A DNA stretch of 64,000 nt. Origin: Haliotis rubra. Its lineage: Eukaryota. The position numbers and the translations under genes are program-made. Below, piece by piece: positions 14,101 to 20,200 of the stretch (within the stretch, counting starts at the first letter, position 1; every line of letters begins with the position of its first letter). Below the pieces are notes generated by a model. It saw nothing but the letters and a program-made list of their open reading frames with translations. It made no database searches and was not told the origin of the DNA. The stretch is from the NCBI RefSeq assembly GCF_003918875.1, contig NW_025767523.1:2728001-2792000 (forward strand). Direction: 5' to 3'.

Positions 14101-16748
14101 TCTTTGTATCTAACCCTGGACCATAACTATTCATAACATAAGTTGACGAATGACGCATTTCCCGTTACTGGCAGTGATATGATCCCTATTAACTGTAGCC
14201 ATTACTACTTTCAACATCTACATCACAGGTACAAGTGGCTAGATTGTATCAAAGCCAAGGAGCCCTACATCGCTGCTATATTTTCATTTTTACATCTAAT
14301 AAGTGTTTGTTTAGTGCAACAGTTACTAAAGTACTAAAGTACTGTCAGAAATAGAAAAAAAAAACAGTTTTTAGGCTGTTACTCTGTATCCCTAAAATTT
14401 ACACAATTGCCAATAGCATATGTCGAAATAACCCACATCGGCCTAACTGGGCGTTGAGTGGGATGCGTAATAGGATATCCAGGAAAGCATGTTTACTCGT
14501 AAAATCGGGCAAAACTTGGAAAAAATACAAACAACTGCTGAAAACAATAGATCAGACTATAGATGGAAAGTAGGTCGCTCAACCAGGTATGACAGACCGT
14601 CAACTCACTTGGCATGAAATGCACGTGCTGCCCACCGACAAGGTGTCATCTCAAATATCTTTTATGCTTTTTCATGTGTATTGAATATGTCGATACTGAC
14701 TATCTAATCTTAGCTAATATCTCTATCCCCAAGCCCCACCCCAACTACCATCAGCAACACCCGTCTTGGTTTTGGCTTTTGAGACAACCCCTCTTACCTG
14801 TTTCTTTTTATAGTGATAGTGAGACTCATGGTATCTACATCCTTAATAGTTCAGTATTAAAGTTGTTATTTTTTATGTTTGCTATCGTTTATTATGAAGC
14901 TATGTCTAATTTCAAAATGGACATTCAAAAAGTGTCATTTGTTATACAATATCATCACACACTAATTTGCATAAAGCCATGGTCTGCTCCAAATAAGTCT
15001 CTTCGGACTTAGAAAAAACCCGCATTGCTCATTTCTGCACTAATATCTCCTCAGTAAAATCCTTTAACGTTTCCTATTTCCCTACCACTGAGACTGTAGT
15101 TAGGCCGAACTTAGTTCAACAGATATTTCACACTTTCACATATTAACTACCTAAATTGTAGATATAAATGTGGGAAAAAAATCAGTTTTTTTCTATTTCC
15201 GACAGTACTTTAGTGAACAGTTTTGGCTAGAATAAATATTTATTGATCGACTATCAGGAAGTAAATAATGGCCATCCATAATTCTGTCTCACAAAGGATT
15301 TAGAGTGACAACTCACGTCACAAGATCCCATAGCCTCAGGGATCCATCCCAGGATGCAGAAAGAGCGAACTGTCCATCCGAGGACAGCACAACATCAGAC
15401 ACAAAGTGGTTGTGGCCATGGAGCTGCTTGTATGGGATGCCGTAGTTGGTCTCATTACGTGTCAGCTTCCACAGGAGCAGGTGCTTGTCTGAAACCATAA
15501 TACCCTTTCACTCCCTGGCCTTTCTATTCATCAAAAGTCCACAACAAAAGTGCTTCTCCAATTCTACAATGATTTCTACAGTCTGTTTGGGTTCAAATGA
15601 GAACAATGAATGATAAATAACTCGAAATAGCTACAAGTGCACAAAACATAAATAAGACACATGGTCCTGAAACCTCTGTACCTAACAGGTTCTGAAATAT
15701 GACGTTTTATGATCTATCACGGAAAAAGTGGTTTAAAACACCATCATGTAATACTGTGCTATTTTCACGCTTCACACCGAGGGGGTGACAAACGGCTGGT
15801 TGCACAGCGCCGGCACCCACTTCAGGTGCAACTGAGCAGACAGGTGAGATGACCCCTACCAGCTGGTGCTGTTCCACCAGTCGATTGTCACCCCTTGTCT
15901 TACAAGCAACAATGACTTGGACAAAGCTGTGACAGCAAAGTTTTTACATAATGCGAAAACAGGAAGATCTCATATCCTTGGTTTAAAAAGGAATCTGAGT
16001 TGCAATTATCAAAGTATAAATAAGTTATGTCTTCTGTTGTTTTAAGAGTTAACATACATATTCACTTGTTAGTACATGATCGTCACGACTGTCTACGACC
16101 GCATCCTGGCTCTCGGCTTATCAATATCTACCATGTCTATGCAGAAACCTGTTGCCAACACATACTGATACATAGGATGATGATGAATTGGACACCTTCG
16201 TCCCCAGTTTTGATACATTTGTAGACATTCTTGCACATTAGATGTGATGGGATTTTAGCCACCCTGGCCATATTCCGTTCTAGCCCATCCCCTTTTCTAT
16301 AAAAATACATTTCAGATACCGATATCTAAAGTCCTTTATAAAGTTGCAGCGAACCTTAATTTCTAACAACATAATTCAGTTCTTTATGTAAGGCAATCAT
16401 GTAGAATCATGAAACAAAAAGAACGCAAAAGTTTTAGTTAACAAACGTCTATCTAAACAAGAACAGAATAGTCTATCATCATCAAATGACATAAAGTGTT
16501 GTTTATTCAAATAGTGCTTAGCAAAATCCAATATTAACACCATTGTCAAAACACACATATATGACAATGCTTTAGACTAAAACTCGTAAATATTATTTCA
16601 GTACTCGTATAGTCACGTTTCTCTCTTATTTACCTCGGGATGCCGACAAAATCGTGTCAGGGTACTGAGGATTTGTGGCAATCTGAGTGACCCAATTGCC
16701 ATGGCCCTCAAGGGTACCCTTTAAAGTCATCTGTTCTTGCGCCGCCAT
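8189..16748 (-). CDS. RACK1: Receptor for activated C kinase 1 (WD40 protein, 40S ribosomal scaffold), ~319 aa. Exons 16748-16634, 15488-15317, 13406-13258, 10686-10591, 9748-9638, 9012-8873, 8365-8189
   Basis: Spliced translation [40 protein letters not shown]...[13 protein letters not shown]...[12 protein letters not shown]...[21 protein letters not shown]. All introns are GT-AG. One extra base in exon 3 and one missing base in exon 6 are probable assembly errors. Confidence 0.98.
9987..10172 (-). mobile_element. tRNA-derived SINE, family A (~170-185 bp)
   Basis: A/B boxes TAGCCTAATGG and GGTTCGAATCC, (TCAG)n tail, TSD ACAGCCAGAT. A decayed second copy follows at ~10195-10320. Confidence 0.9.
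10721..10868 (-). mobile_element. SINE family A
   Basis: Same consensus; TSD TTATCAGCT. Confidence 0.85.
10933..11146 (-). mobile_element. SINE family C (structured non-tRNA head)
   Basis: Matches the 58836-59105 element on the reverse strand. Confidence 0.8.
11232..11333. mobile_element. ~100-bp hairpin MITE (Harbinger-like, CTG flanks)
   Basis: GGCTGTTGTACAAA ... TTTGTACAACGGCACC inverted ends, CTG on both sides. Confidence 0.55.
12510..13106. mobile_element. Foldback element with >200-bp imperfect inverted arms, RACK1 intron 3
   Basis: 12510-12800 pairs with 12890-13106, e.g. TGTTTGCAGTGAAAATGTAC / GTACGTTTTCACTGCAAACA and TTTGTATTACAAGGG / CCCTTGTAATACAAA. The left arm carries an extra ~75 bp. 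Confidence 0.85.
13539..13653. mobile_element. Near-perfect ~115-bp hairpin MITE (Harbinger-like)
   Basis: CTGGGCCTAGATTTTCGAAGCTCTCTTAG ... CTAAGAGAGCTTCGAAAATCTAGGCCCAG. Confidence 0.85.
14323..15214. mobile_element. Non-autonomous DNA transposon with ~40-bp TIRs
   Basis: ACTAAAGTACTGTCAGAAATAGAAAAAA / TTTTTTCTATTTCCGACAGTACTTTAGTG; AACAG near both ends is a possible 5-bp TSD. Confidence 0.7.
15780..15896. mobile_element. ~115-bp hairpin MITE in RACK1 intron 1
   Basis: AGGGGGTGACAAACGGCTGGTTGCACAGCGCC pairs imperfectly with GGTGCTGTTCCACCAGTCGATTGTCACCCCT. Confidence 0.65.

Positions 16749-20200: not shown

Follow-up and report, generated by a model that had tools for sequence, protein, structure and literature searches.

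A head-to-head RACK1-PP2Ac gene pair in the abalone Haliotis rubra and its conservation in molluscs and arthropods

Introduction

Among the conserved microsyntenic gene pairs of metazoans are some, such as HSPD1-HSPE1, in which two housekeeping genes lie head-to-head across a very short gap and have been kept together, in unchanged orientation, across distant phyla (Irimia et al., 2012, PMC3514665). The gene for the ribosome-bound scaffold RACK1 and the gene for the catalytic subunit of PP2A (PP2Ac; PPP2C) are arranged in the same way in the abalone Haliotis rubra, where they lie within a 64,000-nt stretch of contig NW_025767523.1 (positions 2,728,001 to 2,792,000 of the forward strand; hereafter the window). 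RACK1-PP2Ac belongs with known conserved head-to-head housekeeping pairs such as HSPD1-HSPE1, from which it differs in being broken in vertebrates and in the coral sampled here and in not having been found in 80 metagenomic PP2A loci. The main text of Irimia et al. (2012, PMC3514665) names neither RACK1 nor PPP2C, and our literature search returned no description of a conserved RACK1-PP2Ac pair beyond a note on the fly neighborhood (PMC11877148). According to that report, Rack1 of Drosophila melanogaster flanks mts on its upstream (5′) side as a direct neighbor, a likeness between orthologues that covers adjacency (PMC11877148). Relatives of this fly differ, as D. mojavensis has other genes upstream of mts (PMC11877148). 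In the midge Clunio marinus, we found no RACK1 within 10 kb upstream of PP2Ac.

Mammalian bidirectional promoters located in CpG islands have divergent starts less than 1 kb apart, and ETS/GABP and YY1 sites are common in them. The abalone gap resembles these promoters in having transcript starts no more than about 330 bp apart, ETS-type and YY1-like motifs, and a local CpG excess in a CpG-depleted genome; on a cursory look, neither start was seen to have a conserved TATA box at a constant spacing. Unlike mammalian CpG-island promoters, it has its CpG excess on the RACK1 half only, with separate modules divided by an AT-rich spacer. Two further likenesses concern the individual genes. The RACK1 mRNA of vertebrates is a terminal oligopyrimidine (TOP) mRNA and, like those of TOP-type ribosomal protein genes, the abalone RACK1 transcript appears to begin with a C followed by seven pyrimidines, a tract kept in molluscs, beetle, and ticks. 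The human PPP2CA promoter has a functional cAMP response element (CRE), and the molluscs sampled have TGACGTCA upstream of the PP2Ac start region, a resemblance that may or may not reflect homology. Here we describe the identities, orientation, splicing, and approximate transcript ends of the two abalone genes together with the conservation of the pair and of each promoter module, and from these we infer which factors may bind, where transcription may start, and why the pair may have persisted.

Gene Identities and Layout

Each gene has seven coding exons, with GT..AG borders throughout, and the two coding starts face each other:

16748-16634, 15488-15317, 13406-13258, 10686-10591, 9748-9638, 9012-8873, and 8365-8189, minus strand: RACK1 coding region, seven exons
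16749-17247: gap of 499 bp between the RACK1 ATG (16748) and the PP2Ac ATG (17248)
17248-17355, 21533-21742, 22984-23159, 23488-23577, 23820-23981, 24598-24716, and 24962-25034, plus strand: PP2Ac coding region, seven exons

An earlier note, made from the letters of this DNA, had placed divergent ATGs at 16748 and 17248, about 500 bp apart, and the exon models bear this out. The same DNA is present, identical to the window, in NCBI record GCA_003918875.1 QXJH01000008.1 (our locus L006; window coordinates equal L006 coordinates plus 7247), where NCBI has a gene for a 319-aa product at the place of RACK1 (L006 942-9501).

The RACK1 product is likewise 319 aa long when translated with placeholders at two frame breaks that are described below. 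WD40 families are listed for the NCBI product, as expected of a full-length, seven-WD40 RACK1 of about 317 aa. Exon 2 aligns with solved RACK1 structures of the PDB over residues 39-92 of their chains (E about 1e-38), and every exon matches RACK1 of beetle and tick in tblastn (67-79%). A search with exon 2 against protein representatives returned only long multi-WD40 proteins and no RACK1 orthologue, because repeat scores add up. A homologue search with the exon-1 open reading frame (ORF; 40 aa) matched five ORF fragments. Two contigs, L001 (60 kb, in which a retroelement sits upstream of RACK1) and L002, had no PP2Ac upstream and are uninformative on pairing. The introns of human RACK1 contain snoRNAs, and an Rfam scan for intronic snoRNAs in the abalone gene found none, the only matches being three tRNA-like ones from SINE-like repeats. 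In mammalian cells RACK1 binds PP2A, and this binding is governed by Tyr-302 of RACK1 (PMC3195729), in agreement with the earlier note. Its further claim that the tyrosine of the AGY motif is retained in abalone also holds, the residue (304 of 319) being encoded by TAC at 8239-8237.

The PP2Ac product is 311 aa long and ends in RRTPDYFL. It is identical to a protein (P0394) common to four Haliotis assemblies, to which NCBI gives the name PP2A catalytic subunit and which matches human PP2A C-alpha over residues 4-311 (E 1e-212). Its metallophosphatase type, its length close to the usual 309 aa or so, its TPDYFL end, and its nearest relationship, to PP2A-C rather than to PP4 or PP6, identify it as PP2A-C.

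Conservation of the Pair Across Phyla

For a survey of synteny, we took PP2Ac orthologues, as named in their source records, at their genomic places with 10-kb flanks and confirmed RACK1 by tblastn with the window protein. RACK1 on the minus strand, upstream of and head-to-head with PP2Ac on the plus strand, was present in the following loci:

Haliotis, four assemblies: gap between coding starts of 492-499 bp
Bivalve GCA_902652985.1 (L008), which we take to be a scallop: gap of 383 bp
Lottia gigantea: gap of 1698 bp
Tribolium castaneum: gap of 824 bp
Ixodid ticks, five assemblies: gap of 395-397 bp, with a PP2Ac gene spanning 40-60 kb

Orientation was identical in all 12 positive loci, which place adjacent orthologues in distant phyla, Mollusca (Haliotis, Lottia, and the bivalve) and Arthropoda (Tribolium and Ixodidae). 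The pair is therefore not limited to one species. In human, RACK1 maps to 5q35.3 and PPP2CA to 5q31.1 (PMC3195729, PMC4986044), which confirms the statement in the earlier note that the two genes are far apart on chromosome 5. The suggestion made there of an ancient linkage that was broken in vertebrates is thus supported by the gastropod, bivalve, beetle, and tick loci, by the fly neighborhood, and by the separation of the human genes.

Besides Clunio, several lineages had no RACK1 within 10 kb upstream of PP2Ac. These were the annelid Dimorphilus gyrociliatus, with a GDI gene in that place, Octopus (two assemblies), the coral Stylophora pistillata, with an annexin gene, and the crinoid Antedon, with an Xlink gene. 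Of 80 loci obtained by scanning metagenomes with PP2Ac, 26 were 5 kb or longer and none had RACK1 nearby; most are transcript-like or probably from microbial eukaryotes. The pair was thus not seen outside protostomes, being absent within 10 kb in Antedon and Stylophora and split in human, a sampling so thin that it is weak evidence of absence.

Some of the surveyed loci have features of their own. Octopus has a second PP2A-like gene of 262 aa (L012 1-717) about 10 kb upstream of the main PP2Ac (L011/L012 10001 onward) and on the same strand, and two PP2Ac paralogues, P0407 and P0380, lie on one chromosome; this points to a tandem duplication where other molluscs have RACK1. In the bivalve locus, exon 2 of PP2Ac (residues 36-108) occurs twice, at 13899-14117 and 18304-18522, 4.4 kb apart and each 96% identical to the abalone exon. 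The exon is either truly duplicated or was doubled in assembly, the NCBI protein being flagged LOW QUALITY. Downstream of PP2Ac, Tribolium (L018 18389-20842) and Clunio (L019 16114-24081) both have a gene with KH and Tudor domains on the opposite strand, and the downstream neighborhood was therefore kept in insects even where RACK1 moved away.

Transcripts of the Two Genes

Seven public runs from the same organism contain part of 13200-19199, and four of these contain 7-8% of its words, as spliced RNA would. Contigs from three RNA-like runs and one DNA run were aligned to this interval. Each of the three RNA-like runs has one RACK1 contig, which joins 13403 to 15314 and 15488 to 16634 as modeled and which extends in the 5′ direction to 16831, 16831, and 16840, respectively. 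The PP2Ac contigs start at 17172, 17204, and 17227 and run unspliced across 17205/17206 into exon 1 and on into exon 2. The following untranslated regions can be drawn from these contigs:

16749-16841, minus strand: RACK1 5′ UTR, probable extent, from the contig reach (16831, 16831, and 16840) and the oligopyrimidine tract
17172-17247, plus strand: PP2Ac 5′ UTR, minimum extent, from the starts of RNA-like contigs

By the contig ends, the transcript ends of the two genes are at most about 330 bp apart. The region thus has the arrangement by which bidirectional promoters are operationally defined, with two protein-coding genes on opposite strands, 5′ ends facing, and starts less than 1 kb apart (RNA-like contig ends at 16840 and 17172). 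Transcription of RACK1 likely starts at C16841, the first base of the tract CTTTTTCC (16841-16834), which is followed by GG; such a start would fit the TOP definition of a C with 4-15 pyrimidines, and a contig reaches 16840, although contigs cannot fix a 5′ end. The start of PP2Ac is upstream of 17172, probably near the GCCATTTT element described below. A non-coding first exon of PP2Ac that would end at a GT after 16927 and be spliced to 17206 was considered and rejected, given that the contigs are unspliced through 17205/17206 from 17172. No RNA-like contig covers 16876-16948 and none has a joint from 16927, so that the donor-like GT there is unused.

Both genes are represented in all three RNA-like runs. 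Word depth of the contigs was 402, 422, and 1552 for RACK1 and 36, 30, and 89 for PP2Ac, giving ratios of 11, 14, and 17, with the proviso that depth is a poor measure of expression. Within the limits of this measure and of the small sample, the depths do not suggest equal output of the two genes.

Two Modules in the Shared Upstream Region

The 499 bp between the coding starts contain the following features:

16855-16861: ETS-type site CGGAAGT (ACTTCCG in the RACK1 sense), invariant in four Haliotis assemblies; the factor is predicted
16876-16889: CTCF-like CCACCAGAGGGTGC, between the divergent starts and about 35 nt upstream of the RACK1 start; its first bases vary among Haliotis assemblies
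16949-17061: AT-rich spacer between the modules, the least conserved part of the gap, where most of the Haliotis substitutions fall
17089-17127, plus strand: PP2Ac module, with a palindromic CRE TGACGTCA (17089-17096) and GCGGCCATTTTG (17116-17127), which includes the YY1-like GCCATTTT (17119-17126)

Composition differs between the two sides. The RACK1-proximal 182 bp (16749-16930) have a GC content of 52% and a CpG observed/expected ratio of 1.23, compared with 0.50 for the window, while the PP2Ac-proximal 317 bp (16931-17247) have a GC content of 35% and a ratio of 0.71. The earlier note had posited one shared, CpG-rich promoter. CpG richness is indeed found in the RACK1-proximal 182 bp, but the PP2Ac side is AT-rich and the two sides contain distinct motif modules, so this part of the claim did not stand. 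A scan for bacterial-type promoters and terminators returned none and is irrelevant to a eukaryote.

Among the four Haliotis assemblies, identity within the gap is 90-94%, with no more than one indel, in contrast to 52-73% identity and many indels in neighboring introns. Blocks that are invariant within Haliotis include the RACK1 5′ UTR with its pyrimidine tract, the PP2Ac 5′ UTR, a block around the CRE and GCGGCCATTTTG, and a block at 16878-16948 that begins within the CTCF-like CCACCAGAGGGTGC. On the RACK1 side, a C with its pyrimidine tract, ending at a GG, is found 60-100 nt ahead of the RACK1 ATG in Haliotis, the Pecten-like bivalve, Lottia, Tribolium, and ticks. The ETS-type site is about 15-20 nt upstream of the oligopyrimidine start; Lottia has the same motif at the same position, and in the bivalve it is merged with the pyrimidine tract. 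A CTCF-like core, CAGAGGG(T/C)GCTGCG, is common to abalone and the bivalve locus and is not found in Lottia. The CCACCAGAGGGTGC element could serve as an insulator or simply belong to the RACK1 promoter.

On the PP2Ac side, GCCATTTT is present in the PP2Ac sense 84-144 nt before the PP2Ac ATG in 12 of the 12 head-to-head loci, against a background in the window of 11 matches per 64 kb on both strands. Loci without a neighboring RACK1 have it too, Dimorphilus at -109, Octopus at about -210, and Antedon at -122. Every mollusc sampled has a perfect TGACGTCA shortly before the PP2Ac start region, and in Antedon a near-CRE occupies this place. Each of eight mollusc loci has a single copy of the combination of a CRE, 15-40 nt, and GCCATTTT, invariably a short way upstream of PP2Ac, whereas 99 other loci have no copy. 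These observations define a deeply conserved PP2Ac promoter signature, CRE plus GCCATTTT at 84-210 nt before the ATG, extending from molluscs and arthropods to a crinoid. Each gene appears to have its own recognizable and portable promoter module, because the modules are about 1.4 kb apart in Lottia, where the counterpart of the AT-rich spacer that separates them is about that long, and because the PP2Ac module persists without RACK1 next to it. While the region is bidirectional by distance, its motifs therefore favor two abutting promoters, as predicted from sequence, over a single shared element.

Frame Breaks in the Assembly

Three indels interrupt the reading frames of the two genes in the window, all of them in short runs of G or GC and all absent from three other Haliotis assemblies:

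13311: extra G in a G run, RACK1 exon 3
8954/8955: one base missing, RACK1 exon 6, GACG-CGGC versus GACGGCGGC
23073-23078: extra GC in a GCGCGC run, PP2Ac exon 3

Base 13311 is left out in X1, X2, X3, and X5, which are this organism's three RNA-like contig sets and its DNA contigs. A LOW QUALITY PROTEIN flag is attached to one of the NCBI copies of PP2Ac. Because they are absent from the three other assemblies, and in the case of 13311 also from contigs of the same organism, the breaks are best read as assembly indels, with RACK1 and PP2Ac intact; three errors are thereby flagged in the assembly models of two essential genes.

Age of the Pair and Possible Reasons for Its Persistence

We consider RACK1-PP2Ac best explained, with a probability of about 0.78, as an ancient head-to-head housekeeping pair that is held together by a very short and strongly constrained region of two largely autonomous modules. 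To find these two genes in one orientation in gastropods, a bivalve, a beetle, and ticks far exceeds what chance would produce, and the simplest reading would be a linkage as old as the protostome ancestor of molluscs and arthropods, or older, followed by repeated losses. In such a scheme, two highly expressed housekeeping genes would be served by a region that is operationally bidirectional, with divergent starts about 280-330 bp apart. The RACK1 module would be CpG-rich and of the ribosomal-protein type, with an ETS site followed by an oligopyrimidine (TOP-type) start at about C16841, and the PP2Ac module would be AT-rich, with a CRE and the YY1-like GCCATTTT element near its start. Persistence would then likely come about because, with only a few hundred base pairs between the genes, any break or insertion there would damage the promoter of an essential gene, and a shared region of open chromatin would perhaps reinforce retention of the pair. 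The tick gap has remained near 396 bp beside a PP2Ac gene of 40-60 kb, and insertions are therefore excluded from the gap, which by itself does not show a benefit of pairing.

Several points weigh against this explanation. Only one or two species per phylum were sampled, and the pair is absent in one annelid, one cephalopod genus, one coral, and one crinoid, so that its dating reaches back to protostomes at the least. An independent origin in arthropods and in molluscs is formally conceivable, and the support from Drosophila consists of adjacency. The contigs bound the transcription starts and cannot show exact ones, while factor binding and promoter function are predicted from motifs. Selection for pairing is, moreover, indistinguishable here from passive retention of a tiny breakpoint target.

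The least credible alternative, to which we give very little weight, is that the locus is an artefact or a dead copy, consisting of pseudogenes in a duplicated segment or of a mis-assembled adjacency. It would account for three frame breaks within about 1.9 kb of coding sequence, yet three other Haliotis assemblies have the same adjacency without the breaks, neither RNA-like nor DNA contigs of this organism have the break at 13311, conservation of the exons is otherwise perfect, and spliced transcripts match the models. A pseudogene reading of RACK1 and PP2Ac was rejected on these grounds. A different possibility, raised in the earlier note, is that the pair has been kept since RACK1 and PP2A, as physical partners, need co-regulated amounts supplied through one shared bidirectional promoter. 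The binding of the two in mammalian cells and the role in it of Tyr-302 (PMC3195729), the retention of that tyrosine in abalone, the conservation of a short-gap pair across phyla, and the presence of both transcripts in the same three RNA-like runs are consistent with this idea. Conversely, the two halves of the gap differ in motif sets and in composition, lineages with a split pair have an unchanged PP2Ac module, and in Lottia 1.4 kb separate this module from that of RACK1. The pair has also been lost in Octopus, Dimorphilus, Stylophora, Antedon, Clunio, D. mojavensis, and human, contig depth of RACK1 is 11-17 times that of PP2Ac (again, by a poor measure of expression), and RACK1 is chiefly a ribosomal protein with many partners. 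We regard co-regulation of partners as unlikely, and linkage through the protein interaction is currently disfavored because the promoters are modular, the outputs apparently unequal, the losses many, and the main role of RACK1 ribosomal. A stronger form of the idea, in which RACK1-PP2Ac would be a conserved regulatory unit from the protostome, possibly the bilaterian, ancestor, its common promoter region actively coupling a ribosome-bound signaling scaffold to its phosphatase partner in dosage, seems to us equally doubtful; if it were true, lineages that split the pair, vertebrates included, would need another way of coupling.

At the other extreme, the pair may be an ancestral accident that was retained passively, a gap of 0.4-0.5 kb being a tiny breakpoint target and pairing itself being without benefit. 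Repeated independent losses, the separability of the modules, and the tolerance of a 1.7-kb gap in Lottia agree with this. However, the tick gap is fixed at 395-397 bp in five assemblies though the PP2Ac gene grew to 40-60 kb, and the Haliotis gap is far more conserved than the introns; both show purifying selection on the gap. Passive retention alone appears somewhat less probable still than co-regulation of the partners, with the reservation that selection may act on each promoter separately, so that it overlaps with our preferred explanation, a pair held by a constrained region of two modules, and is hard to separate from it.

Molluscs and arthropods separated more than an estimated half a billion years ago, and very few gene adjacencies outlast that separation; RACK1-PP2Ac is one that joins two essential, abundant proteins that interact in mammals. 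With 500 bp and two recognizable modules, the pair makes a compact natural test case, for which Octopus, an annelid, a crinoid, and vertebrates are "split" controls and Lottia a "stretched" one. These natural controls allow a test of whether old head-to-head pairs persist by shared regulation or because the gap is unbreakable.

Other Features of the Window

A single-exon ORF of 560 aa, of BTB/Kelch type as judged by eye, lies at 45831-47510 on the plus strand, about 21 kb downstream of PP2Ac. A BTB-Kelch gene is likewise located downstream of PP2Ac in Lottia (L007 21460-22665), beyond a small minus-strand gene, and the conserved block may therefore exceed the RACK1-PP2Ac pair. A BTB gene is found downstream of PP2Ac in Antedon as well (L017 20204-25569).

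The weak Rfam tRNA matches (30-34 bits) are at 10099-10165 and 31172-31238 on the minus strand and at 52792-52862 on the plus strand, in repeats that share a translation motif, and there are similar repeat copies at 10062-10232, 10596-10859, and 24032-24151. These are probably copies of a tRNA-derived SINE, located within introns of both genes and elsewhere. Transposon remnants were recognized by eye at 934-1903 (minus strand), 30259-31074 (plus strand), and 38006-39111 (plus strand), and comprise broken frames of Tc1/mariner-like transposases and two GC-rich (52%) ORFs that resemble a MULE/FLYWCH-type transposase. Two runs of N, either assembly gaps or masking, occupy 36142-36273 and 36290-36427. 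Toward the end of the window, long acidic, Ser/Lys-rich ORFs of 603 and 215 aa lie at 59362-61851 (plus strand) and 62784-64000, and are followed by a low-complexity repeat of strong strand skew (AT skew -0.8) in which several frames are open.

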